Part shown: in pieces, positions 7,301 to 31,746 of the stretch
How the letters are laid out: the number at the start of each line of letters is the position of its first letter
Numbering within the stretch: the stretch's first letter is position 1
NCBI GenBank assembly: GCA_002104905.1
Contig: MCFE01000347.1
Location: 1-64,000, forward strand
Length of the DNA: 64,000 nucleotides
Direction of reading: 5' to 3'
From: Basidiobolus meristosporus CBS 931.73
Taxonomy: Eukaryota > Fungi > Basidiobolomycota
Translations under genes and position numbers: made by a program
Notes under the pieces: model-generated
The model's database searches: none
The model's input: the letters and a program-made list of their open reading frames with translations, nothing else
What the model was told of the DNA's origin: nothing

Positions 7301-8918
7301 TTTGGCATATTTGATATCTTTTTTATTTTACCTATTATCAATCGAAGAGAGGTTATTCCATCAATAAGTTGCCAAACTTACATGCTGCCATCAAGTTGAT
7401 TACAAATTAAACTGTAACTTACTGATGATGTACCAGGAGTTTCTACTGGATTTTACACGGCCAGTAAATCATTTACTTGGGCTAATCCACTAGCGATTTT
7501 ACCATCATCGCTATGACATAGGCAGCGGATATTGTCAAACGAACAATACGTCACGAATAGAAATCGTGGTACTTGCATGTCTAGACTTCAAGCAAACACG
7601 TAATAAGGGCTGAATTACTACCAAATAAGCCCAAAGAACTGACTTCTATAATGTAATAGACACGTATATAAATTAAATACGAGCAAGCAAAGACTGTACT
7701 GATTTCGCCTGTATCGATATCGTAAATTGGCTCATTTTAAGTATACCAAAGTCCTCAAATATGTATCCTAAATTCAATAGTATGACCTTGCTTTACGATT
7801 AAGCAATAGAAGGCATCAGCTTGGCAAGGATCATTCCGTAAGCCTAACGTGGGAAATACCAAGGCTGATGGGAATTCTCAGCATGAGCTGATCTCGTATG
7901 GGAAACATACGAGCTTCTGGTAGAGGAAACTATAGCTATGGCGAGGGGTTACAACAAGATTTAATAAATAGGAACGCAGTAGGGCTATGGCCACAGCTTT
8001 ATTCTCAGTGCGTGAGGTGAGGAAGGATGGAGATATGGGCCGCTTTTTGGATAAAATTCACGGTAGTAATTGGTGAGGCATGGCACGATCTTCAGAATCA
8101 TCTGATCAGCAGGTTACATTAGTTCCCAAAAGTACCAGAAAGAGATAGCACTCATGAAATTGGTCAAGCTTCTTCTATTCTTGAACGGCGAGTATTTCTC
8201 CCACGGCAAGAGTATTTTCGAATGCTTACATCTTGGTGATAATAGGTGGAGCATTGGATGGGCAAATGAGCATCGAAGGAAAAGGCGACACTGGCGATTT
8301 TCGTGCGTGTGAATTCGTTTGCAAAGCAACAGTCACCATGCGGACGCAAAGCCAGATTAGGATTGACCCGAGATACATTGGGAAAATCACTAAAACCATC
8401 AAACCATCGCATCATGACTAATGACCAACATGACTGCAGAAACCGTCGGAAGCCTAACCCTAATTGCTTCGACAAGCATCACACCAACAGTAACATCAGT
8501 CATCGGCAACTGGCAGCTGCTCGAGGAAATGGAAATTGACCCGATTTCCAGATTTAGTAAATCATTGAGTAATCACTAATTATTCTGGTGTTCATCACTC
8601 TGCAGGTCCACATGACCTTGTCGGATACGAAATCCTCAGGACTGGGAAGGCTGCTGTGGCCGGAGTCCGAAGATTTTTCATTCGAACATGGGAATTGTAC
8701 TACGAAAGACGCTGTTCTTGGAGCATGGTTTGGGAAATTCGGTAACACTCCATCAAGATATTCATTGCACTTGATTTGTTACGGTTGTGATAAATGTTCC
8801 ATTGGTTGATCGAGGATAAAGTGTTCCAATGGTGGGTGCAGGTAACCCCAGTTGGATCATGTATAAATAACTATGGGGGAGGAGCTTTACCATCATCATC
8901 CCACTCATCTATCTAGCA

Positions 8919-10403
8919 ATGAAGGTTCAAGCCTGCTTGACTATTTTTGGCTCTCTGGCACTGTTCACTGCCACCAGTGCTGTCCACATCAAGAGGCACC
9001 ACGCTGAACTTGAGGGCGAAGATTGGATCCAGAGCATTCCCCAGATCCTGGCTAGAGACCCTACAGCACTCCCCGAACAATGGTTTGATCAGAAGATCGA
9101 CCATTTCGCACATAAGACATCCGTCTTCAAGCAACGCTATTTCGTGAATAGCACTTATTTCAAGCCTGGCGGTCCGGTTTATTGTAAGTGATTATCTCTT
9201 GGGCGATATTGTCCTTTTCCTACTTCATGCTAACCGCTCTACTCAGTATACTCTCCTGGTGAGGGCCCCGCAAGACCTGTAGGTGGTGGTCAGCTCCGTA
9301 ATCTTGCTGCAGCCACTAATGGCTTGATGATCGGCTTGGAGCATCGCTACTACGGCAAGTCACTCCCCACTGAGAAGTCGAACTTTGAGGGAATGAAGTA
9401 CTTGACTGTTGATCAAGGTTTGGCCGATTTTGCCAACTTCATCAAGAATTTCAAATATCAGGGTGTTAGCCCCAAGACTAAGTGGGCCCTTGTTGGTGGT
9501 TCCTACGCCGGAGCTCAAGCCTCATGGGGACGTCAAAAGTACCCTGAACTCATTCACGCTGCGTTAGCTTCATCTGGCCCAGTTCAAGCCAAGGCTGATT
9601 TCTTTGAGTACGACCTTGCTTTGACCGAGGCCATTCCCTGTGCTGAGGATCTCCATCAGGTCACCAAGTACATCGATACCGTACTTGATAATGGTAACAA
9701 GAAGGATATTCTCAAGATCAAGACCGCCTTTGGTCTTCAAAACATTACCGACAATGCTGATTTCGCCTTTGCCTACACCGATATCCTCGCCGGTCTTGTT
9801 CAATACTACAAGCCAGCCAAGGTTGACCCTCTTGAGGCTTTCTGTAGCCCATTCGCTTTCGCCAAGACAATGCCTGAGAAGCTTAAGGTCTGGGGTGATT
9901 ATATCCGCAGCCAAGTTACCGGTCCCGACTCTCTTCACTTCTACGACTACGATGGTATGCGCAAGAACCTTGCCCATGATGACACCAAGGGCTGGTACTG
10001 GCAAACATGCATCGAACTTGGCTACTTCCAGACTGCTCCCCGTGGTAAGCTTCCTCGCGTTCGCTCCAAGTATTGCGATTTGAAGCAGCAACTCGGGGCT
10101 TGTGAGAAGATCTTTGGTAGAAAGATGAGCCCTAGCATCGACCAATTCAACCGCAAGCACAAAGGCTGGAACGTCCGCACCTCTAGAATCTTCTACGCTG
10201 ATGGAGAAATTGATCCCTGGAGAAAGCTCTCTGTCAACTCTCCTAATGCTCCCAAGCGTACCAGCAAGCCAGCCAATCCCCTCTTCGTGATCAAGAAGGG
10301 CTCCCACTGCACCGATCTCGGTTCTGACTCGCCTTTCGACACCCAGTCGCTCAAGGACGCCAGAAAGAGCGAAATTGAAGCTTTCAAGAAGTGGATGTTG
10401 TAA
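8919..10403 (+). CDS. Secreted serine carboxypeptidase, family S28 (prolylcarboxypeptidase-like)
   Basis: Signal peptide, FDQKIDHF...QRYF, one intron 9184-9246, LEHRYYGKS, nucleophile GGSYAG, WYWQTCIELGYFQT, DPW and HCTDL motifs. Confidence 0.95.
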
Positions 10404-10850: not shown

Positions 10851-13800
10851 TCATTTGGGCGGTCTGTAGAGCTTCAAGGCTAGAGATGAGCTGAGCACGC
10901 TCAGGCTGGAGCCAATCATCAGGAGCCCAGCAAGTGGAGGTGGTAGCGCAACCTTAAATATTGGGAAGAATACCCCGGCAGCCACAGGGATTGCAAGAAC
11001 GTTGTACCCGAAAGCCCAAATAAAGTTGTATCGAATTCTGTTAAAGATTTTTCTCGACAAGGAGAACAGGACAATCAAATCATCGAGTCTTGATCGTAGT
11101 AGGACCGCCTGCGCCGCCGAGTGTGCAATATCTGAGCCTGCGCCCATGGCAATCCCGATGTCTGCTTGAGCTAGGGCTGGCGAGTCGTTTATACCGTCTC
11201 CAACCATGGCAACCAACATCCGTTTTGTTGGAATCTGCTGTATGGGACTAACCTTCCATTGGAAAAATCGGTTGCGGGCTCTGGATGAGTTCGTGTTGGA
11301 GTTGGTCTTCTTGACCGGCTGCTGCTGCAGCCATTGCACTTTGGCTTTCTTGTGTTCAGGAAGCACATTCGCCAGGATATTTTCGATTCCTAGTTTACCA
11401 GCCACGGATTTGGCGGTCAGCTCATTATCACCAGTAATCATCCAGACTTGTTTGCCTTGTTTCTTGAGGTTGTCAACAGTCCTCTTGGCTTCTTTACGTA
11501 TAACGTCGGCCAAGACAAAATAGCTCAAAACTTGGCCATTCTTCTGCAGAGGAGATTTTTCTTTCAGATCATTCGTGGAGCTCAACAGAGAGAAGCCGAG
11601 CATGACAAGTGTCCCGCCTTCAGATTGGTGCTTGTCAAGCTCCGCGCGGATCAGGGGCGAGTAGATGGTGGCTGGGTAGTGGCACTGGTTTTGGATCATC
11701 CAATTTTCATTTCCATAGACAACTGAAAACCGAAGCGTTCCTGATGAGCTTTTTCTATCCAAGCCAAGGGCAGACACCAGGGCCTTTGGAATGGATGGTG
11801 TGGATATTTCTGCCATGAGACCTCTTCCGGGAACTTCTTTTACCGATTCCAGGGTCACAGGAACCTTACCAAGGCCCTCATTCGTTTCTGTGTACTTCGA
11901 AATTGCCTTGGACAATGGATGATCGCTGGAACATGCCAAGAGTTGGGCCACTTTTTGAATCCAATCGGCAGCTTCTGTATCGCTGAAGCCAAAGTTTTTC
12001 ACGGTAGTCACCTCTGGTCTCCCCAATGTCAAAGTGCCAGTTTTGTCGAAGACAACCGCATCAAACTTGCTTGCGCGCTCCATGGTATCACCACCACCTT
12101 TGATGAGGATACCATACTTGGCGGCTACTCCTGTTCCTACCATAACGGCAGTTGGGCTGGCGAGTCCCAATGCGCATGGACAGGCGATTACTAGAACCGA
12201 TAACCCGAAGAATAGACTAAACAAGACATTGCCCTGGTTCATTGGGATCCAATCTTGCGGCACACGGCCAAAATGAGTTAGCAACATCCATGTGGCAAAC
12301 ACCAGGATGGCCAGTAATACTACAATGGGGACGAAAAAGTGAGAGATGCGATCTCCCAGAGCCTCAAGTGGGGATTTGGTGGCTTGAGCTGATTGTACAA
12401 GGTCTATAATCTGCGAAAGGGTAGTATCCGATGCGACGCGTGTTGCCCTCATGAAAATAGTCGCACTTTGGTTGATGGTGGCACCAGTCACTTCGTCTTC
12501 GACATCTTTTGGTACAGGGACTGGCTCGCCTGTTAACATTGACTCATCAATTGCGGTAGATCCGCGAACAATCACGCCATCGCATGGAAGTCGCCCGCCA
12601 GCATTGACCTTTAATATGTCCCCAACTTGTATCAACTCCAGAGGCATTACCTCCTCCTTGTCTACTTCTCCGCTGTCCATTAAATGGACAAGAACGGCTT
12701 TTTCGGGCTGAAGATTCGTCAGTTTTACCATTGCATCGACGGTTTTTTCCTTGGCAAAGGCTTCGAGATACTTGCCGAGCAAGATGAAAGTAATCAGAAA
12801 GATGGAGGTCTCGAAAAAATCCATGTTGTGGGTATCCATATGGCTATTCATGTGCTCAGAAGGAGTTAGTATCTTCACGATGATATTTACGACGGATGCG
12901 ATGTACGCAACCCAGGTCCCAAGAGCCACCAACACATCCATATTGGCAGTCTTTGCGCGCACTATTGACATATAGCCATGTTGCACAAATGGGACTCCGA
13001 GGGTGAGCTGGACTATTGTTGCGAGAATAAACATGATGAAAGCGCCTAGTCCAAGGCCTTTCATTCCAAAAATGTCCTGCTTGAAAAATAGATAGGCGGC
13101 ATTGTCTGATGGGAGGAACATTCCAATCACCATAGAGACAACGAACGCTGGTATAGCAAATACCAGAGAGAATAGGAATTTCTTTCGAGCTTTGCGGATT
13201 TCTCCCTGGGCTCGTGCCTGGAGATTCACATTTTGGTTGGAATTATTCGTGAGCACTTTTGCCAGATATCCTTGCTCTTTACATATGGCAATTAGTGAGC
13301 GAATACCAATAGTATATCCTTGATGCTGTATACTAAGAGAGTACTCTGGTTTGTCCATCCCTGCTGTCCTGTTGAACTTGCTCATGTAAAGGGATTTATA
13401 AACCTTTGAGGCCTTTGTTTTCCTGGCCGTGCCATTACTCCTTTGAGAAAGTGAAATCGAGATGATACCATCTTTTGATAAGAGCAGCTCTTTCAAGGCA
13501 TCAATGTTTCGGGAATTTGTAGTGAAGGCCGGATCTTCAGAAAGAATTAGTCGAGTGGTGCTGGCTTTGTTGATGTTGTTGGCATTCTCTGATTTTACGT
13601 TGCCGTGCGGGGTGGCCAATTTCTCGGAATTCTCGGTCATTGAGATGGCGGTATCTTCTTGGGATGGCTCCTTCTCTTCGTATGAAGAGTCAAGTACATC
13701 ATACCCAAGATCCTCGATATTTTGGGAAAGTTGCGCCGTCGTTATGAAGCCGGCATCGTGTTCAAGTATGAGTTTTCCCGTAAGAAGGGAGAGGGAAACG

Positions 13801-13898
13801 GTGTTGGGCTTGACGCCCGTGATCTTTTTTAGAGCTGACTCGATGGCGTTGACGCAGGAAGAGCAGGTCATCCCGCTGACTGTGAAGGTAGAGATCAT
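10851..13898 (-). CDS. Copper-transporting P1B-type ATPase (Ccc2/CopA-like), single exon
   Basis: GMTCSSC HMA domain, TGE, CPC in TM6, DKTGTLT phosphorylation site, HP, TGDN, GDGINDSPAL, YN and MxxSS Cu(I)-site motifs. Uninterrupted 1015-codon ORF. Confidence 0.97.
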   Translation of the reverse strand: MISTFTVSGMTCSSCVNAIESALKKITGVKPNTVSLSLLTGKLILEHDAGFITTAQLSQNIEDLGYDVLDSSYEEKEPSQEDTAISMTENSEKLATPHGNVKSENANNINKASTTRLILSEDPAFTTNSRNIDALKELLLSKDGIISISLSQRSNGTARKTKASKVYKSLYMSKFNRTAGMDKPEYSLSIQHQGYTIGIRSLIAICKEQGYLAKVLTNNSNQNVNLQARAQGEIRKARKKFLFSLVFAIPAFVVSMVIGMFLPSDNAAYLFFKQDIFGMKGLGLGAFIMFILATIVQLTLGVPFVQHGYMSIVRAKTANMDVLVALGTWVAYIASVVNIIVKILTPSEHMNSHMDTHNMDFFETSIFLITFILLGKYLEAFAKEKTVDAMVKLTNLQPEKAVLVHLMDSGEVDKEEVMPLELIQVGDILKVNAGGRLPCDGVIVRGSTAIDESMLTGEPVPVPKDVEDEVTGATINQSATIFMRATRVASDTTLSQIIDLVQSAQATKSPLEALGDRISHFFVPIVVLLAILVFATWMLLTHFGRVPQDWIPMNQGNVLFSLFFGLSVLVIACPCALGLASPTAVMVGTGVAAKYGILIKGGGDTMERASKFDAVVFDKTGTLTLGRPEVTTVKNFGFSDTEAADWIQKVAQLLACSSDHPLSKAISKYTETNEGLGKVPVTLESVKEVPGRGLMAEISTPSIPKALVSALGLDRKSSSGTLRFSVVYGNENWMIQNQCHYPATIYSPLIRAELDKHQSEGGTLVMLGFSLLSSTNDLKEKSPLQKNGQVLSYFVLADVIRKEAKRTVDNLKKQGKQVWMITGDNELTAKSVAGKLGIENILANVLPEHKKAKVQWLQQQPVKKTNSNTNSSRARNRFFQWKVSPIQQIPTKRMLVAMVGDGINDSPALAQADIGIAMGAGSDIAHSAAQAVLLRSRLDDLIVLFSLSRKIFNRIRYNFIWAFGYNVLAIPVAAGVFFPIFKVALPPPLAGLLMIGSSLSVLSSSLALKLYRPPK

Positions 13899-15430
13899 CT
13901 TTGTGTGAAATTAGTGAAGGAGCGCTACGGGAAATAAAAGCTCTAAAATGCTCGAGCTTAAGAAGAGATATTGAATTGACGATTGTTACTCCACAAACAC
14001 CGGCTATATATACGGGATGCGATGTTACACACCGTCTAAATAATTGGTAAGCACAAGATGCGCATTGTTAGCAGGATACGATCATTATCAATCAGTCCAA
14101 GAGTTCAGGTTGGAAGGAGATTTCCTATTGATCCCCTTAATTTCATTTGAAATTGAGCAGTTTTCACAAACGAATGTGAACTCTGATTGGCATTGACTTA
14201 TTTTCTTCCAAGGATCTTGTACGGAGTGTTATCCGCTTGAACTAGACTGCTGAGCACGCTCTATACACTGATGCGCCCCACCTCTGCTGGTATTGAGAGG
14301 ATCAGTGCTCCTCGGTCTCAGCACTATGATCGCTTCACATCTAACTGGATGCCATCTAATTTATGTATGAGCATGTTAAGATGCTGTTGATATCCCCTGT
14401 GAGTGTGTTGATGGTGAATAAACATTTTGGAGCTGGGTGTGCGTATATTAACAACATTTGATTTTTTATTCAATGCATTCATAAGGCTAGTCCCATGCGT
14501 TGCAACGGAGCATTCGTATTATGATGGTTGGAAAACGAGGTTGAACGGATCATACTGATCCATAGGGATAAACTGGGGAGGATAAGCTGATGCCACCTGC
14601 CCAATGGCATTTATCTCTCTCTGTGTGGAAACTTGCGCGCTTTATGCCATTGGTCTCTATCGCTCGTCAGTCACCCACACTGAAATTGTGCTGGATACAA
14701 GGGTGATTTAAGGTCTTGGAGAATGCTCAGAACCTGGAAATTACACAGGCATCAATATGTTAGGCCTTGAGGGATTTAGGAGTCACATGGCAACCAAGTG
14801 CGTCAACTTTTCTAGAGGAGTAGGTCTGGAGTACTGTCACGTAGAGTAACTGAGGTATTTTTGCTGCCCTTCTATACAGTCCCGCGTCTTCAGCAATAGA
14901 AATCCTCCTGATCGCCTTCATTTAAAGGAAACAGAATAGGGGGACAATAAATGATGTGGCGATACAGTTCCACGCCCTACAAGCGCCGTTTGGATCTAGT
15001 TCTACTGGAGGTTTCGTGGTTGACGATTGCTGAGCCGACTAATGCCGATATATCCGGCTATAGTGGGAAATGCCCAATCTGAATGCTGGCCGACAAATAA
15101 GCAACCCACCATGCCGTCATAACAACGATAGGTGCAAGAGCAAGCACTTTACCTGTTTCTAACTACAGTCTAACTCCTCCACTACGATGGTTATTTGTAG
15201 AATTCAGCAACAAATTGCCAGCGTACTGATCATGCGCATGCTCTCCCCGCAAGGGAAACTCAGAGAGGCCTCTGGTGGGTGAAAATATCCGAATGGTTGA
15301 AATTTATTTGACAAAATTTATGCACTGGTTTTCAGCTTAAAAAAGCAAACCACAACCGGGAGATGTGTGTGTTTAGGTGTTCCAATTGTGTGTACAAGCA
15401 AAAGAAATCAGTTACAAGATGGCAAACGAA

Positions 15431-17960
15431 TCAGAGCGAGTCGGCTCTAGATCTTGCTTGGACTGAGTGGAGATTTTGGCATTCAATAGTCAGCTGGTTG
15501 ACAAATTTAATCTCGTCTTCCATGGTTGCTCGAAGTATCACCACTCGCTTCTCAGCCTCGGCTATTTCCTGTCGGAGCAGCCGACAATCTGCCTCATAGG
15601 TCTGGATGGTCCGTTTTTCCGCATCGAAAATTTCATCCTCACGTGCTGCTAGTTCTGTTCGACGAGACAATGCATGAGCGATATCTCCTTCAATGCGCGA
15701 TAGTTGATTCCGAAGGCTCACGATCTCCGTATCTTGAATTGCCTGGATCTTGGCTTTGATTTCCTTGTGAGTGGCGGTCAACTTCTGATTCTTGGTTTGG
15801 ATCTCCTTCAGTTGCTTGGCGAATTCATTGCTTATTCTTTGGAGCTCCTTTTCGACTTCTTTCAGTTGCTGCCTGCACTCGTTCGCCTCTTCGCCGACTT
15901 TGACAATACGATCGCGTATCTCCGCTTGTTCTAGCTTCACGGCTGCGATCTCCTCAACGACCGCTTTCGAATGGGCGTCCATCTGTCGAAGATGCTCTTG
16001 AAGAAACTGGATTCGCGACTTTGATCGGACGTCCATGGCGTTGGATTTGGCAAGACTACGGTTTAGGCTCTCGATCTCATTGCGGAGCTGGGCTTCGGAC
16101 TTCTGAAGATCGCGCTTCAACTTCTTCAGAGACAACAACGCCTCCTTTTTTTGCTGCTTCTCAAAGTTCAGCTCGGACACAAGCGTTTGGTAGAGTGCAT
16201 AGCGATCCGATTCATCAGGCAGCCCGACTGTTTTTTCATCCTCGGCATGGGTTTCTATTTTAGGCTCGACAATCGGGGCTTCGGTGGTGGTGGCGGCGGC
16301 ATGGTGGTCCGCTATAGCTAATTGTGGAAAGTTGCAAATACAGTTAGATCATGCCAGCTAGGCGGGAGCTCAGGTGTTGTAGCGAGCAGCAGGTTTGCTT
16401 ACCGGTCGAAGGCGAGGTACAGAACCTGCATATTGCGCTTCTATACCCCATGATAGTAATGGTGACCTCATATTCAGTGACGGGGTTAAGCCCTTGGATC
16501 GTGGCGTTGGCCTCTTCGACGCTAACATGGACGTCCTGCCAGAGCATGTTGTCAACCCGGACCTTTATACTACTGACCTCAATGGGTAGAATAGAGGTGT
16601 TTGTGGTGCTAGGACCATCAGCCCCTTCAGAGGCCCCAGAAGAGCTACCCTCCGTGCTCTTTTCTTTGGGCTCCTCCGAGCCAGACGCGGATGCCCTTGT
16701 GGGGGCTGGGCCGTGATCATCTCCGTACGCCTTACCTGAGGCTCCCAAAGTATGTAGGATCGTTTCAGGCATGATCCAATACAAAGTGACAGAGACCGGG
16801 GTGATTCTAGAAATACATAGATCAAAACTGTTGGGGATCTCTTCTCCGTGCGAGGCGCGTACGAGAGAATCCGACGATGGTTTCCCACTTTTGGGGTCTT
16901 TGAGAAAGGACGGGTCGCCGATAGGCGCTGGAGCCGCGCTGTGCCGTTGTCGTATACTGCCGGGTATTCTGCGGGGCTTTCGAAGGGGTGAATACTTTTG
17001 AGCCCGGTGGATAGGGTTGCTTTGGGAATCGGGCTCGTGACTGCTGTTGATGCGTAGGAACTGGTGGCGGGACCGCTGGTTTAAGTAAGACTCCTCTACG
17101 CTGATATCGGATGAAGATATTCGGTGGTTCTTCCACTCCATAATCTGACAGAGCATCTCGGCGGCCAGAACGTACACACCATAGCTCACCGCGTGGATAG
17201 GGACGAGCAAGGCCCCACCCTCCGGGCTGGAAGACCTTCCGTAAAGATCGACCGAGAAAATGCCGAGACATATCAGCCAAGACAACGAATCGAGCCCCCG
17301 GATACTACTGACTATCGACAAATAAAACGAAGTATCAGCAAGAATATATAGAGCCGTATTATCTAACAACGGATGCACTACAGTCCAGATCACGATATCC
17401 ATGATGAGCAGAAAGAGCATGAGCGCAAGCGATATCGAGGACGACGCTTGATAGGCCTTGAAGCAAGCCACGGCCGACATCAGCGACGCGAGCCCCCATT
17501 CGATTCGGAAAGCCGCTGGGATCACGGCATCTGCCACGAAAACCACCGACCATATACTAAGCACTTTTAGCGTGCTATAGCTGGGGAACGAGGCTCCCAT
17601 TCTCCTGTCGAAGCCCAAGGCCCACTCATATAGAATGTAGAGAAGTCTATTGGCCTCCATGAAAATCCCTTTGTAGCTGTTCCCGTCGAACAATTGATCG
17701 GCGGTGGTGAAATCCTGGCTGGGGAAGAAATCGTTCAGCACGCGGGAGTCGAAGTATTGGACATCGGGATTTCCTTTGTAGTACAGGGTTGGGCCAGAGA
17801 GTTTAGCATGAGTGTACGGGGCATCGCCTGCGGTGTGTTGAGAAGCACTCTTGCTGCCGTGTGCATCATAGACATCATGCTCATCGTTTTGTTGGCATAC
17901 TTCGAGAGGATGGATGGTTGTACTCGGTGAATCGGGAAGCGGTGAGTCTGAGGAATCCAT
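15431..17960 (-). CDS. Membrane protein: macoilin-like N-terminal TM bundle, FN3-like domain and long C-terminal coiled coil
   Basis: ORF 16344-18038 splices (GTAAGC donor at 16402, AG acceptor at about 16312) in frame to the coiled-coil ORF 15431-16180. TM segment LKVLSIWSVVFVADAVIPAAFRIEW; FN3-like PVSVTLYW...GLNPVTEYEVTI. Start taken at MDSSDS (17960). Confidence 0.8.
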
Positions 17961-18553
17961 AAGAAGTTGGGTAGACGTCAAGTATAACCTCTGCGGTAGA
18001 CAAAAATCAGTAAGGCAATATTGACAACTCGTCAACAACAGGCTGTCCTGTACGGGGAAAATACCTATATTTTGATGTGATTCAAAATAGAATTTTAGAA
18101 AACCACAGATTATTCGAACACACGCTCACTCTAAGGTCGCGAAATACTGTAGGTAAATAGAAAAGGCGGTTTAGTGAAAGGTTCTTGACCGAGTAGGCCC
18201 AACAAATCAATTTGATCAATTTTTGGAGCTTTTAATTCCTTAATCGTTGATGATTTGGTTAGGTGTTTAGTTCAAGCTCCAGGGCGCAGCAGTGTTAAAC
18301 AAGATTAGTTGCATTGATTATGGCCATAGTCGCCAGGTAAACAGCTTTCATTATTACGTATTCGACAAATTCTCTTGGCTTGAAATACATATGATAGATG
18401 CATCAATAACAAACATGGTCACAGTCTAACCTGAATCTTCATCACCATAATCGGTGGATTGTGAACAAAAAAAATTCAATGTAGTGTTCTGCCTAGGTGC
18501 AAATATATTATTCCTTGACAGTTTATCGGGTCGACAGTGAATCAGTGGCCAAC

Positions 18554-20072
18554 ATGAGCCATTTACCTCCCGTACCATCGCCAAAATCGAAGTTGTTCTT
18601 GACTTACTCCAACTTCAACTCTTCCAAATCTTGCCACAACAACTTTGTTGCCCAGCATCCATTCAATCATGAGGTAATTCAGATTTTCACATGGTCGCTC
18701 AGCGGTGATTGGATTTCTGCCCTGTTTGAGATAGCGCTTTCCGTTCCAAGCCCTCAACAGACTTCATTTTTTTCTTAGTTGGAGATTTTTGTGCCTGGCG
18801 TAGTGTCCTCCAGTTCTGAGTTGTTGCAAGACGTTTTGAGCACCGATTTCTTCTATAAAGCACAGTTGCCGTTGAGCTTTTTTATCCGACCCGATTTCCT
18901 CCGCTCCTATATCAAAAACGGTAAAGACAGACAAAAACCGCCTTCGGTGGAATTGAAGATTCATCGAATATTTGCTACCTAGGCTCAGTTACAGCCCTTA
19001 CTCATAATGCTGGAATCGATACCGACGATGTATTTGCACTAGATAACACAGGCATGTTGTCTTTGTTTTTCTTTGTTCGACTCTCATACTTGCACGTAGT
19101 GCTAATGGGCAAGTAATTGATAGGTGTGTTACATCTGAGCGTTACGAAGGATACCTATGAGCAGCTTGGGCTCGTTGGCATGCCTGCGAAATTTGGATCT
19201 GCGGGACATCGCTATGGTAAGCACCCTGCTGTACTGTGTGTTGCGATCAGTTTGGATTAATAGCCAAGGGCCTGTGTAGTTGTCACGGTCGATCTTCGCG
19301 CTGACAATATGTTGCCTGGCCACAAAATCTACGAAAGAGTCAAATGGTGCTTTGAGCATACTCTCCCCAACGCTTACACCTTCATCATTCAAGCGACCAA
19401 CCCTGGTAATATACCACATAAACACTTGTCGCCCTGTCTACTCATGTAGTAACCGCCGATATTTTGTGCAGATGGCAAATGCGTAGAGCTTGAGCTCCCC
19501 GCCGATTCCCAGCCCAAAAAAATTTATCCAGCATGTCTCGAGAGCGCACAAGAGGGTATTGAAATTCCCGACATGAGCACACTTCTAAACAATGAAAACA
19601 TGGAAAATTGGAAAGAGGAGGCGCTGGAACGCTACGAATGGCTGGGCATGGTTGCCTGCCGTACCCCAAGGTTAGCATTATAATTGCCGCCTATCTAACG
19701 TAATGCACGTTACTTACGAAGCCATTCACGATATTAAGGATTGAGGCCAATGGGTCGGTGGATCCATTTGTATCTATCTACAGTACGCCAGAGCCATTTG
19801 CTGTTGGAGCCGGAAGCAGTGTTAAAATAACAGGAATGATCAAGCCATCCACCATCAGCTCACTTGTCAGCCACACAAGAGAGTACTTGAAGATCAAGAA
19901 GCTGCCCTGGGCCAGCGTTACTGTCTGGGGGTTCCTGGACTCGCCCATTTCGTGGCAATCCAAGGAGCATGGCTATCTGCTCAATGGAGAAAACCATTAC
20001 ACCTTCATTGTGTACCCCAATGGTACATACATACTCTATCAGGCGTGTGGGTCTCACGATAACTCCTCATAA
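18554..20072 (+). CDS. RPP40: RNase P/MRP protein subunit p40
   Basis: Seven exons splice in frame. Motifs: HPFNHE, GIDTDDVF, LSVTKDTYEQLGLVG, YERVKWCF, EWLGMVAC, DPFVSIY, WASVTVWGFLDSPISW and GENHYTF. Confidence 0.88.
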
Positions 20073-20341
20073 AGGCCATCCTGGAATTTTTAGTGGCCGA
20101 TACTCGTATTCATCCCATCTGAATCATTTTGGATTCCTGTGCAATGGTGTCAGAATTTTCTTTCCCTTGATACTCGTTATGGCGGAGTAAAAAAAATCCC
20201 TAGATGGATCTGATTGAATGCGTGATTGAACTTGGATGTACGTTAAAAAGAAAAAATAATTGATTTAGGCAACTTCCAATAAAAAAGTTGAACTGCACGA
20301 AAATTTCGGCCTTTACCTTTATCTCTTCAGGTAGTTCGAAC

Positions 20342-22836
20342 ATGTCTACAGCCAAAGCAGCCAAGAGATTTAAGCTTCAGGTTAACATCGTTAATGTCGA
20401 GGAGGAAAAGCTGGCCAAGGATTGGTCAGTTAACCCCGTCAAGCGGTTTCTTCTCCTCACCGAGGGTAATGCCTCCCTCTTGAGTGTAAGACGCAAGATC
20501 GAAAACATGTTTGCAAAGCTCTATCCTAACAGCAGGTAATACCAAACGCATATACATTTACCTTTTTGCTATTTCTCTAACTTTCTTTCCAACCGTTGTT
20601 TAGCCATACCGCTGTTGCCCGTCTTAGAGACGCTTCACTCTGCGAGCTCGACGACGATTTCAAGGTTGCTGAAGTATTCGACGAGAGCAATGTTGTCTAT
20701 GCAGCCCTGGCCAACAATCCCATGAACAAGACCCCTAATAATGCGCCTGCTTTGAACAAACCGGTCCCCAACGCCGAGCAGCAGAAGAAGAGAAAGCAGA
20801 CCCAAAATGAGGCAGTTGTGAACAGCCCTATAGATAAACAAACTGCTTCGACCCCTGATTCAAATAGTCCCACTATTGGCGACAACACTATTGCGGCCAA
20901 GGAAACCCCTGAACCACAGCCAAAGAAGAAGAAGGCCAAAAAGAAGAACCAGAAAGCTGCAAACGCCGAGCCCACCCCGATGGAGGTGGAAAGATTGCCC
21001 GAAGGCACTAAAGCTCCTCAGGAGAATGCTCCTGCGAAGAAGACTATCGACGCGCCTCCTCAAGTCGTCAAGAACGCTGGGCCAAAGGAGAAATCAAATC
21101 AGCCTGAAAATAAACTACCCCAGGCCCAGAAAGCTCCCCAAGCTACTGCAAAGAAGAGTACTGAGACGACTGAAGCACAAAACAAAAAGCAGCCACAAAC
21201 AAAAGTCGTACCCAAAAAAGGTACTTCTCCCATCGTAGATCAACCCAATAAGCAAGCGACTCAAGAAGCCCAAAAGAAAAATGCCAACGCCAACGCCAAC
21301 AAAGCCCAGCAAGCGCAACAGCCACAAAAGGTAGAAGCACAGGCAAAAGGCAAAAAAGGGAAGAATACTCCACCACAGGTTTCTTCAGCTGTCAAGGTAG
21401 ACGAAACTAAGCCGAACACTACCAATCAACAAACGCAACCCAACCAAAAACAGCATGATGTAGTGGCTCAAAACGCCGGTCCCAAGGCTGCTGAAGAATC
21501 TCAACAGAATGAGAAACCTGCCGAAAATAAGAAACGTAAATTGGCTTCCACAGGAAACAACGACAACCAAGTTACTAAGGGGAATGGGAAACCAGCCGTG
21601 GCCCCGCAGGCAGCCAAAAAGGATGTCGAGAAAAAACAGCCATCCCAGCCTGTGAGTAATGATGCCTCGAAAGCTGAGGCCCCCAGTTCAAAGAACAAGC
21701 CCACGAACAACCAGAAAAAAGCTAAAACTGAGGTTGCCGAATCCCCAAAAGTGACCCCGAACCCTACCGTTACCAATGCGCCTAAAGCTACGGAAACGAA
21801 GGCTAACAAAAAGGCGGTGGTCAAAGCTTCCCCCCCTGAAGCTAAAGGAGCCGAAAGCGTAAAATCCCCACCCTCAACCCAAGCAACGAAGGCCAATAAT
21901 AAGAAACCTGAGAGCGCGCCTGTCAACAAGGTACAAGCCGGCAAAGCTGGGGCATTGGCAAATGGAGCCGCTGCTACCAAAGAGCAAGCGAATCCTGTCA
22001 TGATTCCAGAAACGCCCACTCCTGTGCATTCCGATCCTCATATGGATAAGAAACCCATCAGCGCCTACGGAGTACAAATGAGAGATGCTATAGGTGTTGA
22101 GGCCGGCCGTATGATGGGACGCTTATTGCTTGGTGCTGATGAAGATGACGATGAAGAAGAAGGAGACCTCAGAGAACCCCAGCAATCGCATATTCCCCCG
22201 ATTATCATGTCCAGCAAGAAATCACCCGCCTTGACAAGGGTGAGCGGTGGTATTTCATCACCAGTAATTACTCCTACTCGCAAAGAGTCTATCAAACAAA
22301 TTCCTATGGAAATGAACTCGGCGGTTACTCCAGCCAAAGTGACCGGCGGAAAGCCAACTCCAGAGGCGATCGCAAGCAATTCGAGTAGTTCGGATGGTAG
22401 CTCTAGCAGCGAAGACTCTTCTGATGATGAGGATCCAGCTTCCAAGAAGACGCTAACCAATGTGGCCACTCCAAATACGAGCATCTCCAAAGCGTCGCAG
22501 ATGTACACTCCGTATCAAAACCCCACATTCTCCTCCCTCCGTCAAATTGCCGCATCTGCCAAGCTAACCAATCTTGCGGCGAAAACCTCAGCTATCGCTG
22601 GCGGTGTAACCCCCTCTATCTCTAAGCATCGTACTGAACCAATGGATGCCTCGTCTTCGTCTTCCGAGGAAGAACAAGGCGACGACAGTGACAGTAGTAG
22701 TTCTGACGAGAGTGATAGTGATGCCGAGAAGCCAGTTGCCAAAACTCCTCAACTCAATGTTAGACTGGCCGGCCAGAAATCAAAAGGTAGAAACAAACGC
22801 AAGTCAGCTCTATTCCAGCTAGCTAGAGATGCTTAA
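20342..22836 (+). CDS. Nucleolar Cdc14-binding-type protein (Net1/Tof2/Dnt1 N-terminal domain) with a long low-complexity K/Q/P/S tail
   Basis: N-terminus KRFLLLT...KIENMFAKLYP | RLRDASLCELDDDFKVAEVF matches the Cytokin_check_N pattern. One intron at about 20536-20603; acidic Ser tracts and a basic C-terminus. Confidence 0.8.
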
Positions 22837-23235
22837 TTCCGCAAGTAATTCACCACAATACCCCGACAGATATCTTCAACTCCATAGCATAGTTATATGC
22901 TGCATCTATGGTTTGTCGATTCAGTTGAAATTCAATCTCTGTATAGACGTTACCTGTATTAGTAATAAAGCATGCAATAATTTATCCCATATCTTAGACA
23001 ATAATATTGCCATTGCATAGAGCTTGATTAGTTGGCTTAGTTGGCTCCCACACCAATGGAGTGATTTTTCTACGTTCGCAATTCTCCATATAAATCCCAA
23101 AACTTCAAGTCACGAAATAACTAGCACAGCAGTCACGATTACGGTTACGGTTACTGGAAATTTCCCTCGGAATGTATATCATATCTTGTACTTCTCTGGC
23201 TACTCGGCTATAACTACCTCTACAGCTGGTCCAAC

Positions 23236-24723
23236 ATGAACTCTGTCAAAGCGAGAGAGAGAGGTGTCGGAGGCGTGACAACAAGTTCCCCGATATCGGT
23301 GTACGCGGAAGGTAAGAGGGGATGATGAGGCGAGTCTCGAGCTACGGACTGATCTGTCTTGGGTTCCAGGATGAGCGGCATTCTTATCCGACAGAACGTC
23401 CTGCGTGACAAAGGTGGATTGGAAAATATTGACGACTTTTTCGGGGGAAGAGCAAAGTGTGGTTCCAGGGGTGAGCATGCCCAGTCGCTTGAGGCAATCA
23501 ATGAATAGCTCTGCAGATGTTGGCTTTTACCATGACCTTAGCATCTCTGTCGTCACCACCGACCCTTAACAATAAGCAACCATTACCTCCCCAGAACCGT
23601 ATGGCGAGGCGGATGAGGGCATTTCGAACACGAATGAGATGGCTGCAGCCAGCGGACACCTTTTCCCGACCCAATCAACCGTCGATTTACTGATGCACAG
23701 AGCCATTTCCAAGCCTGGCAAGAGAGGTAACTTACCAGAAGCCACCGAATGCCTGGTCATCTAATGATGGTTTTCTTTCGTTTTGTAGCAGTGGTCGGAG
23801 CAAAACACCCGGGTCAGGGCCCATTCAATGAGGAGAACGATCAGGATGGGTACGTTTCATTTTTCTGTCAAGAACTACTAGCTCACCAGGCGACTAGGGA
23901 TCAGAAGAATCGGGAGAACCAAAGTGAAGCCTCGGGACTTCTGGCGAAACGAGAGAGTTTTGTACGGCCGCCGAAAGTCAGGCAAGGTGGGATAAGCCGT
24001 AGAGCAAGCTTGGATATTTGTGTTGACCAAATGTAAAGGACCCAATGTTGTTTCCGTGGTCAAGGAGATCGTGACATCCCGCGGAGCACCGGTTGCTGTC
24101 CAAGAAAAAGAATGCCAGGTGGGTGATGGTCGCGGATGAAAGTGAGGAAGAGGAGTACAACGATGGGCCAATCGACAAAATCCCCACACTCGGGAAGAAA
24201 TTAAACAAGGTAATTTTGGTAGGGCCTGGCTGCGTGAGGATTCGTCTCTAAGTTGGCCAATATAGTGGCCGGCTTGGCAAAGAATATGACCATCACCAAG
24301 CCCGTGAAGAATCAGACATTCGAATTCGAGAAGACATTTGATGAGCAAGATCTCATGTCCTCAGGAATCATATAGTTACAGTTTGATGGAATGAGGCCGA
24401 AGAGGAATTCTGGCGACAATGCTGTGGTGGGCGTGGGAGAGAGCTGGGCCTATTCGAAGCGCAAGCTCACCCTTTCATCGGGTATTTTTTGTGAAATCCG
24501 GTGCCTGCAGAGCGACTGCTCATACTACCAGATTTATCATGTCCGCTGGAGGCCAGTTCCACGTGCCTAGAGGTTGGTCAGAGAACTCCAGAATCCCCAT
24601 GAGAGGCGGTGAGACCTAATTGAACTTATTTCGGTAGGAACTCAGTACCAACTCGAAAACATCGGTTCCAAAGAGACCCGGTTATTCTTTGCCCAAGCCC
24701 GAGAAACCGTTTCTGCAGAATAG
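23236..24723 (+). pseudogene. MIF2: Centromere protein CENP-C (Mif2/Cnp3), disrupted
   Basis: Mif2_N motifs DNKFPDIGVRGR and RDKGGLENIDDFF, CENP-C motif RRIGRTKVKPRDFWRNERVLYGRR, and cupin VFFVKSG...GGQFHVPRG...YQLENIG...RLFFAQA. Lesions: ATG out of frame across a (GA)n tract, frameshift near 24074, in-frame TAG at 24373-24375, and GG instead of AG at the acceptor 24480-24481. Confidence 0.88.
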
Positions 24724-25428
24724 ACGATGTAGCCCCAGCCGATATGAAGCATCATTGCACAGACGTGGATTCGACCGTACAGCCCAACTCCAACCGTAGA
24801 TTACTTCGCCTCGTGACTCCCTCCTGTTTGCACCCAAGCATCTGGCCTGATTGCGTATCCGCCTAACTGCTCTTCGCTGACCGAGTTAGCTGCACGGGTC
24901 GGCGCCACAAAGAATTGCTGTTATGAAAACAAATAAAACCCCACCGGCCCTAGGATCTTTTTATTTCATGGTGCAGCAACCGGATGAGCCGGTTAGGGAT
25001 GAGGCGAGGCAATGATCACATTACATGGAGAAATCTTGATTTTCACGGACAATTTCAAAATGAACCAACTATTACTTGAAATCGTGATTTGCATGTTACC
25101 AAATTGGTGGCACCTCCAAGGGAGAATGAGGCCGCACACATGCTTGATTTGCACACAAACACTTCACGTTTAATCCGCCACATAGATTGAGTGGTCGGAT
25201 TCCCGACTAAAGCGGGCATGAACAGACTCCACCCCCGCCCACATCGTCCCACATCCCCTGCCAATTTAGTACATCAATCTATACTAGCACTGTGGAGGAT
25301 TGGTTTAAAAGCACCCGGCGATCTTGCTGGCTACACATCACCACAAAACCTTTCCGCGCAAGCCTCAGCCCAAGGGACCTTCTGGCAGAAGAGCATCCAC
25401 CCAGCAGATAGCCGCAAACCGCAAAATC

Positions 25429-26453
25429 ATGGCCGAGTCCTCACACGAGTACACATCAGAACACGAGCTGTTTTACAAGACAAATGTTCACTTGGTGGTA
25501 AACTCTGTTTCGCTGATTATCTTCTGGAGCACCTCCTACAACTCTCTGCTACTGGTGCGGCAGAAAGCCAGCTTCAGTCACGCAGTCTGTTTATTTCAGT
25601 CCATCCTAGGCTTTGTTGCTACACTGAGCAACGTCTTGCACTCGCTGATGCTGGACCAGGATTGCGTTCTGGGCATGTATCTAAACGTCGTTTTCTACTA
25701 CCTCTCCTCGGCCTCCGTAGGATGGCTGTTGGTTCTGAAAGCCTACGCGCTCCACAGCAAGTCCAAGGCGGTCATCCTGATCGGCGGCATCTTGAGTTTG
25801 GTCAAGATCTCTTTGATGGCCCCTACGTTGATAGCAATGAATGTTCGCAGCGAGCCGCTGTGCCAATTGAGCCTGCCTCAGATCAACATCCAGGCCACGG
25901 GACTGGTGGATATGGGTCTGCTGGCTCTCTGCCTGTTTTACTTTGCCCAGTCCAGCCTGCGAAAGTCCCGGCACTTCAAATTGCGCATGAAGGAGGCGCT
26001 GCAGAAGGACGGGGTGGTGTATTTCGCCATTGCTGCGTTCTTGCAGTTCCTCGGCTTGACCAGCGTGTTAGGGAACAGCCTCTGGCAGGGGTATTTCGCG
26101 ATTGTATCCATGACACTGTTGTGTAAGTAGTCGGCGGGTTTGCTTCGTGGTCCTGGGTACTCACCTCTCCATTCCTCCCAGGGAGCTTCTACTCAAAGCT
26201 GTTGTACGAGGGTCTGATGCATAGGATGGACTCGACCTCCTTCGTCTGTACTGGAGACTCCTCGGTCGATCCAACTCCACGCAACGCCAAGCAGGCGGGA
26301 GCTTACGTGGTCCACATCGAGGATCCGGACAAACAGTCGATTGAGCTTGGGGCCATCGATGCCGATGCCGATGTCGATGACGAAAACAAAGCAATCGAAA
26401 TTGACGACTCCCAGTCTCAGGTGAAACTGACTTGCCCCATGGCGTTGGGTTGA
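25429..26453 (+). CDS. Seven-transmembrane (GPCR-like) membrane protein
   Basis: Seven hydrophobic segments by eye, Cys at the start of TM3 and in the second extracellular loop, KDGVVYF before TM6. One intron (about 26125-26179) joins to ORF 26202-26453. Confidence 0.75.
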
Positions 26454-26695
26454 TTTCTCTTGGTATCAAACGATTGTACATTTAATTGTTTCTAGTATAA
26501 TATGGATTTGGACATCACAAGTCAAGTGTTACATAATTTGATGAGGCTTATTAAAGCTCAATTCCATCGCACCATCGGTCCCTACAAAAACCATCTCTTC
26601 CGCCCGCAACCTTGCCCGCCAAAGCCTCCCAATGCCTACAGCTGCAGCCCATCTCTCCCGCAAGTGCGAAGTTACAGGGGGAGGCCCGTTTTCTT

Positions 26696-29129
26696 TTAGC
26701 CGGAGGGGCTGCTTTCCAGCAGACGGTCCGTGCTCTCGTTGGTTGGGTGAGGCTCATCCGTGGAATCGTCAGCGGTGACCTCTCTATACCACCCTCTTTC
26801 CTGGGATCTTTTTACGATCAAACACCCGACTCCCACCACCCCAATGACCGCGAAAATAGCAAGTGCCAGGTACCAGTTGGCGTCCGTAGGAGGTGTCGCT
26901 GCGACCTCCGCCGTCAGGCCCTTGGCGGTTGTCGCCTGGTCCTTGAGATTTGGGTTTGATTCAACACCAAACATAACAATCGCCCAGTCGAGGAAATCCC
27001 CACCTGCGTCGGGGTTCACCCGATCAATCACCTGGAGTGTCCAATTCCCCAACGGTGATTCGTCCCTGCGTTGCAAGACTATTAATCGGACAGCTCGAGT
27101 GCTGAGCAGCGCGTTATCGCTTACCAATGCTTGACCGACATGAATGTCCAGCTTTTCATCCCGGCTTTGCTCTCATCAAGCCTACGGCGAGCAGCCAGTT
27201 GCGAGACTATCTGGTTTGGGGATATGAGATACACCTCCAGATCGCCTCGTCTGGCGTGGTCAATGTTCACCCGGACGGTGACGTGCTCCAGCGAATGAAG
27301 TTGGGCCGGGCCGGTCTCTGCTTCTGTGATCTGGATGGTGCTGTTGACGCCGTGCTCGCCCTGGGGTATCTTCTTGCCGACCACTTGGACGGGGGTTTCC
27401 AGGCGAATCTGAGGCCCCACCGATTGGAATGTTTTTGCTGCTTCCACGATCCGGTAGGCGTCTAGCTTGCCATAGCCGAACTTGTGGTTGAAGAGTCGGC
27501 CAGCAGCGGTCGGCTTCCAGTCCTCATCTTCCAGCGAGATGGGAATCGCCGCCTGCACACAAAGATGCTGGATATCTCGCCAATGCAATTCTGGGCTATG
27601 GCAACGGGAAAGAAGATGTGAACACATGCCGTCTCTTCATGCCGCACTCGTCCACTTACCGAATAGAAAGTACGAGGGCAATGATTCCTGCGGCCAAGGG
27701 GGCGGCAGCCGACGTTCCTCCGTGCAGGTTGGAGCAACTCGAATGGCCAACATCGGTCGTATACTGTGGAAGCAAGGGAAGGCTTAGTTCTGGCCGAGAT
27801 AGACGACTGAGCCGTAGTTGAAAATACGTACAATGTAGTTGCCTTGTCCGCTACTGTAGGACACTGCCAGTTGCGCAGCGCAGCTCTCCGAATAATACGG
27901 GTGGGCGTCGGTATGGTCGATGGCCCCAATGGTCACGGTATAGATGCTGTTGGTGTATCCATCGAAGTTGCAATTGTCGTCGTGGGACCCACCATTCCCG
28001 GACGCGAACACGAAGACACTTCCTTTCCCACCGCGCCCTTTTTGGATCCCGTTGATTAGGGCGTACAGAATCAACCCCTTGGGTCCATCCATCGATTGGC
28101 CGTCGTCGGGTGGCCCCCAGCTGCAGGAATACACTTGGTTCTTTTGGTATTGGTAGTTGATGGCCAGCGCTTCGTCAGTGTCGGTGATCTCTGCTGACAG
28201 TATCCTCAGTCCTAATAATAGCTGTCAGTAACAGTGGATCCCGCCGCACAGATGTGCTCCGGCTTACCGGCCACTTTCGCTTCATACGCGACCCCGATTC
28301 CGCAGAAGTCGTTCTTCGCCGCAGCTATCTCTCCGGCACAGCGCGTGCCGTGGTAATCATCCGAGAGGCGAGGTTTCGGCTGGCTGACATGGTCGTTAAA
28401 GTCAAACGAACCCTCAGCAAACTAATCCCCAGAATCAGTATAGAGTGGAGCCAGCAAATTATCTGAATAAACACTAACGTAATTGCTCGCAAGGTCCTTG
28501 TTGTCCATGTCCAATCCATCATCGAGAATTGCCACCACCACTCCCTTGCCCGTGATGCCTTGCTCCCATACCCCAGTCACATTGATGTCTCTCTTGGCAC
28601 CGTTATGCTAGGTCAAACAATAGGATGTTAGCCGGCTGCTAGCCACTGTGCGACATCAAGTACATACCAAGAACCATTGTTTTTGGAACATGGGATCTTC
28701 CAAAGGCGAATTGTTGGACGAGGTAATATTACCAGAAGTAGCTCCGTTTGGAGGAGGGGGAGGAGGGATAGGGCCTCGCTTGCTTCGAAGTCGAGGTATT
28801 TGCTTCTCCAGTGAAGATATGCTTGCCAAAGCGGACAGAGCGCGCTTTTCCAGCTGTCCACCAAACTGAAGCTTCTGCAACTGCTCGACCTGTTGGCCAA
28901 CTGGATCCTCGTGCTCCCCCGTTTTTGGGCAAGAGAATAGATGGTAATTCTCCAGCTCCCCTATCTGACCGTGATGCGTCAGGTCTAGCAGACGAGCTAT
29001 CTCCGACGGGGCGGCGGAGTGTATAGCGTAGTAATGATGCTCTCGATGGTTTTGCCTTACCAGGTTCCAACCTAGCGTTGTCGAGACGCACGCGAAGAAA
29101 AGTGCGATAAGTGGTGGTGGGCGTAGCAT
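26696..29129 (-). CDS. KEX2: Kexin/Kex2 proprotein convertase (S8B)
   Basis: Signal peptide and prodomain ending RSKR; catalytic motifs [18 protein letters not shown] and HGGTSAAAP; P domain [18 protein letters not shown]; a TM helix and cytosolic tail. Introns splice in frame. Confidence 0.96.
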
Positions 29130-29566
29130 GTTCAACAGAGCTGGCTATGCTGCATGGAGGAAACCCTTGAACTGACTCGACCATACTTCGTGCGGGGTCT
29201 TATGAATATGTTCGGCTGCCGATTTGCCACGTGTAAACCGCGTGCTCGCAAACCCCAACAACAACAAGCCGGCCTTCGAAGGGCACCAAAAGGTTTGCTT
29301 GTTTTCATATGCAGCAACCTGCGACACCACTCGCCTCTGTGCGATAATCGCTAACCAACTGTGGTAGTGGTTTCGAACTCTATTTCGTCCACACCCATTG
29401 GCCGATGAGCGATCACATGATGGAACCGAGAATATGATCATTTCTCACATGCTGATCATGGCTGAGCCTGACACAAAAATCTAACCCACATGCACAAAGC
29501 TTTCCCACAGATGGGCTGAGATTAGCAATTCGTCAGTGGAGTATCCATACCTTGAGTTCGCCCAGA

Positions 29567-30826
29567 ATGCCGTGCATACAGAAACAACACCTCAAGAACT
29601 TGTCGGGATACTAGTACAGTGGTGCGGACAAGTCCCTGCTATCGAAATATGTATTGCAGGCTTACTGGACGAGACTGGTGGAGTAAGTTCTCGCTCGACC
29701 GTTTCTGCGTGTGGCGCGAGTGCCGACCTTTCTGCATTTGGACCCAACTTCATCACGCTCCTTGGCTTCTCACCTTCCTCGACAGCGTTTATTAGAACCA
29801 CCGCATTCTCACGCATGCGCTGCTTTCAGATATGCCCTCGGTCTTTAGGTCTACGCCTCGCTTGATACCATCGAGGGTAAGCAGGCTGACCGCGATGACG
29901 CTTCTTTCCAGTAATTAATCAGAGTGCAATCTTACGCCGGGTGTGATGGCGGCTGACGATTACATGGGACATATCGACGAGTAACTTCTACCTTTCGACC
30001 TGGGAAGAGTACCATACTGGGACTTTGTATCTCGGCTATTTCAGCGGTCCAGTGGAAGGGATCGTAATGCTCGTCATTTTATTCGTTTTAACCGGGCTGC
30101 TAGGTAAGTATGGGGATCGACCCCCCCCCCACAGAGTTGTACAGTCCTAAGATACCATCGTATCATATATAGAGGGCGGCCCTGTCTTTTGGGGATCGTC
30201 GTTGCGTGAGGTTCTGGGCCTGGCGCCTGGCAGGTGCACTTGGATCTCTGATTACCCTATCAACGTATTCCTCAACGCACTCTCGATTCTTGTACTTGGC
30301 AGCAACGTGGTCAATGGGTTCGTATCGCCACGCCGGTTTTATTGGTAAGCTCGCTGGATTCTAATCTTGCGTTTAGCATCGGACTGGTGTACAACTATCT
30401 CCTTACCTACCCAGGATTGTGACCCACCATTTGACCCCGTTCATGATATATTGCGGATGCTCATTTGGATACATGGCTGGCCGTATCATCCTCGCCCATG
30501 TCACGAAGGCTCCATTCCCGTTCCCTCATCGAGTGTACATTCCACTGATCTTGGGCTCGCTGAAAGCCCCACTTCCCGCATATTTCAATTGGTAGGCCTT
30601 CTCGGAACCCTTGGCAATCCACACCCCCAGTACTCAACCGCCTCCCCTCCCCTCCTCTCCTAGGAACTCTCTTTTTCCGATGGAGTACGAGTACCACTAC
30701 ATCCTGTTGGCTCTAGCCTACTCCATCGCCATCTACGCCCATTTTGCCATCTCGGTGATTTGCGAGGTATGCGACTACTTCGACATCTGGTGCCTCAGCA
30801 TCAAGCATCCCAAGAAGCAACTGTAA
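29567..30826 (+). pseudogene. Choline/ethanolamine phosphotransferase (EPT1/CPT1 family), disrupted
   Basis: Reads MPCIQKQHLKNLSGY*YSGADKSLLSKYVL (TAG 29612-29614), PNFITLLG, GL*VYASLDTIEGKQA (TAG 29846-29848), TWEEYHTGTLYLG, GRIILAH and a C-terminal CDYFDIWCLSIK. The CDP-alcohol motif is truncated after KQA. Confidence 0.88.
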
Positions 30827-31746
30827 ACCACTCTCCCTCAGAATCCGTCCCATGCCTCCATCAAAAATAAACCTGCCTTTATTCCATCCAGACGGACCAT
30901 CATTTATCCCCCCATGTTCCGAAATACTTACCAGAAATCCACTGCTTCCACCCGTCCGGCGTCGGTGGACCAAATCTTGCCTCCACCGCTTCTGCGGTAA
31001 AGCTTGCGTAAAAACCAAGTGGGGGTCTGCTAGTTGCCGGTGGAGCAGACGGTGAGGATGGGATTTCTTGTGGGCAGTGCTCGAGCCGGTGCTTGGATCG
31101 ATGTTCCCTTGCCTTGTCACACATGGGTCGGTCTTGTTCGGGAGAGAATCGGAACTCCCATTGCCCCAAGCCAGTGTACAATGGACATTTGTTGTCGGAT
31201 CTGAACTCGAACGAGTCATGCTCCACCTTCGTCGTGTCCGGCTGGCCATTTTAGGGTTCGCTTTGGGAGTCTGACCCATCCGGCACTCCACCAACGGGAT
31301 GCCCAAGGAAAGAGCACGGCGATCTGCCACGTATGACGGATTGGCTCGCTGTGAAGGTACGATACTGTGCTCAAGATGGTTGACTCGACTGGTCCCGTAG
31401 AGGAGTGGGGTCAGCGAAGTGAATGGGCCGGTGTTTATTCAGGTAGGATAGATCCGGTTCGTGACTGAAATCCGACCTCAGCAGCGACCAATCACCCGCC
31501 TGGCCCGGGCATTGGATCGTTGATCCGTTCACTTGGACTCATTCTGGTTTATCCACAGAGGAAGGTTGGGTGACTGTTGATCGAATGCCCCCTAGAATTC
31601 GCCTACTTCTTGACAATAAGATGCATCTAAATGGGTCGGAATTCTCCGAGATGTGATAAGAGTCGAGTGGCAATTGGCGGAATATAAATGAAATCCTTAT
31701 TTTACTGCTCCTTAATGTCCGAACGCTGTCCCATGGTACTTATTGA

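Follow-up and report, generated by a model that had tools for sequence, protein, structure and literature searches.

Remnants of CENP-C/Mif2 in Basidiobolus meristosporus CBS 931.73 very probably represent a non-processed pseudogene in a genome with three intact copies

We analyzed a stretch of 64,000 nucleotides of the Basidiobolus meristosporus CBS 931.73 assembly GCA_002104905.1 (contig MCFE01000347.1, positions 1 to 64,000 of the forward strand), which we refer to as the window. The public locus of the gene model K493DRAFT_356121 on this contig (L002) agrees with window positions 13371-36453 in every letter. Between positions 23236 and 24723 the window harbors sequence related to CENP-C (Mif2) in all three hallmark parts, the Mif2_N domain (PF15624), the CENP-C motif and the cupin domain, as an earlier note on this DNA had recognized. 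A three-frame translation of 23200-24760 displays the Mif2 N-terminal pieces 'DIGVRGR' and 'GLENIDDFF', and an ATG at 23236-38 is homologous to the start (MNSVK...) of intact paralogs such as K493DRAFT_311389. The Pfam match to Mif2_N at 23371-23469 was obtained with a 33-aa exon piece and lies below the gathering score (E=0.015); membership is established by 79% nucleotide identity to exons 1-2 of K493DRAFT_311389, whose own Mif2_N match has an E-value of 1.5e-11. The CENP-C motif IRRIGRTKVKPRDFWRNERVLY is found at 23900-23965 when read in the homologous frame and conforms to the consensus R-R-x-x-R...P-x-x-[YF]-W-x-x-E, with an Ile taking the place of the Ser after RR. The cupin domain is matched in two portions (CENP-C_C, PF11699; E=5.7e-7 at 24482-24579 and E=0.021 at 24628-24720). 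A functional gene would unite start, motif and cupin in one open reading frame across canonical introns; here no single frame or obvious splice path links them.

A stop-free reference for the full gene being absent, the 32-aa cupin exon (24482-24579) served as query against a representative protein library to search for intact copies. The best library match was the complete 508-aa CENP-C protein K493DRAFT_311389, which is 84% identical over this exon. A word search with the latter protein retrieved four proteins of B. meristosporus CBS 931.73, namely K493DRAFT_311389 itself (P0001; locus L001 on contig MCFE01000035.1), K493DRAFT_19557 (P0004, 528 aa; locus L003), K493DRAFT_319237 (P0006, 390 aa) and the gene model K493DRAFT_356121 (P0020) at the window locus, as well as an intact CENP-C homolog of Basidiobolus ranarum (P0005). 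Mif2_N, CENP-C_C and cupin all score above the Pfam cut-offs in each of P0001, P0004 and P0006. The first two of these genes consist of ten exons with nine GT-AG introns in the same phases, the third has five GT-AG introns, the phases are common to them, and intron length in the intact paralogs ranges from 55 to 73 nt. The earlier note had held that CENP-C is present only as a multiply broken gene and had named an intact, expressed copy elsewhere as the observation that would speak against this. As regards presence, the claim is wrong, since three intact copies with all three domains are encoded by the same assembly, one of them in a collinear duplicate of this neighbourhood.

The exon structure was derived for the three intact genes, and L001 was then aligned to the window (Table 1). 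Identity to L001 amounts to 72-88% in most exons and 63-66% in the two short exon 5 pieces, compared with 65% in introns and 54-57% in the flanks. Introns 1, 5, 6, 7, 8 and 9 are located at the positions they occupy in L001.

Table 1. Exon and intron remnants of the CENP-C copy in the window, aligned to L001.
Feature	Position	Strand	Remarks
Exon 1 remnant	23236..23311	+	79% identity to L001 exon 1, one 2-nt gap
Intron 1 (GTAAGA...CCAG)	23312..23369	+	phase 2, homologous to intron 1 of three intact paralogs
Exon 2 first part, Mif2_N core (…GLENIDDFF)	23370..23441	+	79% nt identity to L001 10142-10213
Collapsed middle	23442..23694	+	from blastn map and frame translations
Exon 5 first-part homolog	23695..23726	+	3 nt shorter than paralog, in frame
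62-nt intron (GTAACT...TGTAG), phase 1	23727..23788	+	no counterpart in L001; at L003 intron 5 position
Exon 5 second-part homolog	23789..23849	+	4 nt longer than in L001
Intron 5, 48 nt	23850..23897	+	common to window copy and L001
Exon 6, CENP-C motif	23898..23981	+	83% identical to L001, no indel
Intron 6	23982..24038	+	donor GC
Exon 7 (linker)	24039..24209	+	-2, -12, -13 nt vs L001
Intron 7 (GTAATT...ATATAG)	24210..24265	+	70% identical to L001 intron 7
Exon 8, first cupin half	24266..24426	+	TAG at 24373-75
Intron 8	24427..24481	+	acceptor GG, weakened donor
Exon 9, cupin core (VFFVKSG...FHVPR)	24482..24572	+	88% identical to L001, lesion-free
Intron 9, 65 nt	24573..24637	+	GT-AG intact
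Exon 10, cupin end	24638..24723	+	stop TAG 24721-23 at L001's stop position

Compared with K493DRAFT_311389, seven or more lesions that disable or weaken the gene are present in the window copy. In exon 1, two additional nucleotides (GA) at 23253-54 within a (GA)n tract (23253-63) shift the frame, and translation from the ATG via the homologous splice sites ends after 26 residues. The middle of the gene has collapsed, as about 669 coding nucleotides of paralog exons 2b-5a are shrunk to 253 nt that keep a single similar island of 34 nt (23480-23513), in whose frame two TAA stops follow (23567-69 and 23573-75). The end of exon 5 is extended by 4 nt (23846-51); the position of the GT donor of L001 is occupied by AT (23846-47) and the next GT is located at 23850, so that the frame is shifted on entry into exon 6. 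Intron 6 starts with GC at 23982-83, which is GT in both L001 and L003. The linker exon 7 has lost 2 nt between 24076 and 24077, which causes a frameshift that runs into a TGA (24137-39) in the incoming frame, near 24104-24111 a further 12 nt that leave the frame unchanged, and between 24185 and 24186 another 13 nt, the latter representing a second frameshift. Within the cupin, the TAG in exon 8 replaces an AAG (Lys) codon of the paralog. The acceptor of the conserved phase-0 intron 8 reads GG at 24480-81, directly before VFFVKSG, and AG in all three intact paralogs (L001, L003 and L004), and its donor has changed from GTAAGT to the weaker GTGGGC. Exons 9 and 10 have remained intact, as has the stop codon. 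All four lesions listed in the earlier note, i.e. the ATG displaced by one GA unit, the frame switch near 24074, the TAG in the cupin and the GG acceptor, are thereby corroborated by comparison with the paralogs; the extension of exon 5, the GC donor, the 13-nt and 12-nt deletions and the collapsed middle with its two TAA codons come in addition to these.

Three ways of bridging the lesions were considered and discarded. A first model built on splice-site consensus alone yielded a stop-free path through 23370-23990 with a 124-nt 'intron' (23471-23594), which was dropped as this 'intron' contains remnants of exon 4. The frame lost through the 4-nt extension of exon 5 would be regained with a cryptic acceptor at 23887-89; its use is unlikely, as the resulting intron would measure 40 nt with a branch-point-like CTCAC only 3 nt from the acceptor. 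Skipping of exon 7 would be in frame, both flanking introns being in phase 1, and leaves the TAG, the GG acceptor and the 5' frameshift uncured.

The surroundings of the locus are duplicated. Positions 1-18727 of L001 are collinear with 13000-30935 of the window over at least 18 kb at 72-81% nucleotide identity. The block around L003 is more loosely collinear and comprises genes for a short-chain dehydrogenase, a peptidase S28, CENP-C, a CDP-alcohol phosphatidyltransferase and FIT, while the locus of P0006 is not collinear with the window. Hence, three collinear paralogous blocks reside on three contigs, the relationship between window positions 1559-34722 and L003 being the older one with 68-80% identity in exons only. 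This arrangement is consistent with repeated large-scale duplication, and the three-fold collinearity fits the gene or genome duplication that has been proposed for Basidiobolus on other grounds (Henk & Fisher 2012, PMC3281927). In a maximum-likelihood tree, built with the window copy translated in its homologous frame and X inserted at the breaks, this copy and P0001 are sisters (support 100/99), P0004 is joined with P0005 of B. ranarum (83/78) and P0006 branches first, all Basidiobolus copies forming one clade (91/94). The branch of the window copy has a length of 0.40 compared to 0.12 for P0001. The two sister copies share their start, intron positions and at least 18 kb of collinear flanking genes; they differ in that the window copy lacks most of the middle, shows four times as many lineage-specific amino-acid changes and possesses the additional intron at 23727-23788, which is lost in P0001.

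We then compared substitution rates over the 261 codons that can be aligned among the window copy, L001 and L003. Window copy and L001 are separated by a dS of 0.57 and a dN of 0.135, and with L003 as outgroup the three-point dN amounts to 0.103 on the window branch versus 0.032 on the L001 branch. Tajima's relative-rate test counts 40 lineage-specific amino-acid changes in the window copy against 10 in L001 (p=2e-5), whereas third positions evolve at equal rates (23 versus 30, p=0.34). The unique changes are spread evenly over the three codon positions in the window copy (22:21:23) and accumulate at the third in L001 (7:9:30; Fisher p=0.002), and of the residues that are invariant in the other paralogs, 22 are lost in the window copy and 4 in L001. 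Relative-rate test and codon-position spread both show that the window copy has evolved under weaker constraint than its surviving sister. For the window branch we obtain an omega of about 0.36 and for that of L001 about 0.11, values that are only approximate because dS to the outgroup paralogs is saturated and an equal split of dS between both branches had to be assumed. The whole-branch average of the window copy is not omega = 1, which counts against a dead gene. Taken with the higher identity of exons than of introns, the omega values suggest that the window copy was probably constrained for part of its history since the duplication, its death having come later.

The public gene model K493DRAFT_356121 (P0020, 607 aa) bears on the question whether the locus still yields a product, be it a truncated or alternatively spliced protein, for example one carrying the Mif2_N core, or a regulatory RNA, and might have been repurposed. 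The model demonstrates that a stop-free path exists, the omega of the branch is below 1, and the Mif2_N core, the exon with the motif and the final two cupin exons are well conserved; with 83-88% identity to the sister, the motif exon and these cupin exons also count as evidence against the death of the gene. However, the path starts at an ATG at 23371 and spans 23371-26450, where the frameshift stop and the TAG are bypassed by 'introns' of 28, 43 and 39 nt, compared with 55-73 nt in the intact paralogs, and then takes an 822-nt jump into a downstream gene for a multi-pass membrane protein (~25363-26450). Exon 6 and the cupin are read out of frame in this fusion, and no Pfam domain is found in P0020. 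Beside the intact paralogs, the downstream gene has separate homologs of 234 aa and 241 aa. We conclude that P0020 is a chimera and an artefact of the predictor, and the annotation should be split into the pseudogene and the downstream gene. A search of sequencing runs returned no RNA run containing the locus. Since the substitutions specific to the window copy are also even over the codon positions, we regard a remaining product of the locus as very unlikely.

It is still less probable that the lesions are artefacts of assembly or sequencing and that the true gene is intact. The indel in the (GA)n tract is of a type to which some platforms are prone, but the lesions are varied (deletions of 13 and 12 nt, splice-site substitutions, a nonsense codon and a loss of 400-600 nt) and are accompanied by a fourfold excess of amino-acid replacements. 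Moreover, contigs from two separately assembled runs of the probable source sample each span 20500-26400 (5.9 kb) with 0 differences and 0 gaps at full depth (about 102), so that both reproduce the lesions and none lacks them. The same runs yield a second contig set at 80-88% identity and a depth of about 107, and all five of its loose ends are found exactly in L001; a further copy at 80% identity or more was not seen among the contigs of these two runs. The contigs without differences exclude an assembly error and show that the dead copy and the intact one occur side by side in this DNA sample, with equal copy numbers. As the assembly derives from the same DNA sample, the contigs are compatible with a mutation specific to the culture. 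The neighbouring long open reading frames are likewise clean, and the earlier judgement that a general assembly error is unlikely is substantiated. That Basidiobolus might be losing CENP-C as Mucorales did, with the locus representing a loss in progress, corresponds to the other proposal of the earlier note. It could draw on the broken state of this single locus only and is refuted by the three intact all-domain paralogs in the same genome and the intact homolog in B. ranarum, which leaves it with next to no probability. The underlying statement on Mucorales is correct, as neither CENP-A nor CENP-C is present in these fungi (Navarro-Mendoza et al., bioRxiv 10.1101/706580). The cases resemble each other in that a CENP-C gene is non-functional or absent in an early-diverging fungus; in Mucorales, however, a whole lineage is devoid of the protein, whereas B. 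meristosporus has a single dead copy beside three intact ones, which amounts to turnover of gene copies with the function kept.

We thus consider the locus very probably to be a non-processed (duplicated) pseudogene of CENP-C/Mif2 in B. meristosporus CBS 931.73, as the other part of the earlier proposal, a dead duplicate, had envisaged. The intact sister in a collinear block, the lesions and the accelerated amino-acid change all argue for this assignment. An origin as a processed pseudogene (retrocopy) was rejected, as introns are kept and the context is syntenic. A plausible course of events begins with a large duplication, segmental or genome-wide, that would have copied at least 18 kb of the neighbourhood. 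One copy, K493DRAFT_311389, would have kept a working CENP-C, and the existence of two more intact paralogs would have relaxed selection on the window copy. The latter would then have gathered frameshifts, a nonsense codon, losses of splice sites and, in its disordered middle, a large loss of sequence. As it stands, a protein with both the motif and the cupin dimerisation domain can no longer be read from it in a single frame. From its sequence, the window copy is likely to be without present function. The locus shows no essential difference from fractionation pseudogenes that arise after large-scale duplication, which likewise keep their introns, have flanks collinear with the survivor and display mixed indel, nonsense and splice lesions under relaxed constraint.

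For centromere biology the locus carries little weight, as the suggested loss of CENP-C in a second fungal lineage is not borne out. In surveys of kinetochore genes, B. meristosporus should be entered with three intact CENP-C genes and one pseudogene. The locus further illustrates cleanly how a duplicate decays in a genome whose collinear blocks are at least three-fold, and may be used for dating. A search of the literature for work linking Basidiobolus with CENP-C, the kinetochore or CENP-A returned nothing relevant. What mild interest remains attaches to the fact that three diverged intact paralogs of CENP-C have been retained. Some Drosophila likewise keep several intact CENP-C genes per genome, namely the lineage-specific paralogs Cenp-C1 and Cenp-C2; the finding made here, in contrast, concerns a dead copy, and any specialisation of the Basidiobolus copies is hypothetical. 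We deem it possible but rather doubtful that the three strongly diverged paralogs (dN up to ~0.5; 390 to 528 aa) have divided kinetochore roles among them, e.g. between mitosis and meiosis or between nuclear states. The dead copy would then be the visible loser of a four-copy CENP-C family, a reading that we hold to be similarly tentative. Split kinetochore roles, if true, would be unusual for fungi; the genome of B. meristosporus has been reported to be very large.

Several further observations were made in the course of this analysis. The window copy contains both introns around exon 5 (23727-23788 and 23850-23897), of which L001 (11177-11232) lacks the first and L003 (11165-11225) the second. 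This pattern points to reciprocal intron loss after duplication, the pseudogene apparently keeping the fuller ancestral set, and makes the locus usable for studying intron loss among paralogs. Another run filed under the same sample, inspected over 20650-25288, does not contain the window; it yields a contig of 21.6 kb whose syntenic copy of the neighbourhood is more diverged and aligns only in short stretches. Either another organism is covered by the sample label or the contig represents a further diverged block. In the representative library, the protein P0003 (194 aa) is 65% identical to the cupin exon with an apparent unspliced intron translated within the cupin, and is probably part of a CENP-C of some related fungus in which the gene was mis-modelled. 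The CDP-alcohol phosphatidyltransferase gene encodes proteins of 393 aa and 395 aa with PF01066 in two paralogous blocks. At the corresponding window positions 29566-30935, the product is annotated at 30067-30826 with 187 aa and no Pfam domain, and the window is about 340 nt short compared to L001 (L001 17068-17605 versus window 29684-29884). This window gene is probably a second decayed duplicate. Finally, L001 contains at 7430-9622 an open reading frame of 730 aa, homologous to a 746-aa open reading frame of the window (20596-22836) that belongs to the gene annotated as RNase P p40 / Cytokin_check_N. The open reading frame of L001 is missing from the called genes of MCFE01000035.1, which may reflect an annotation gap.
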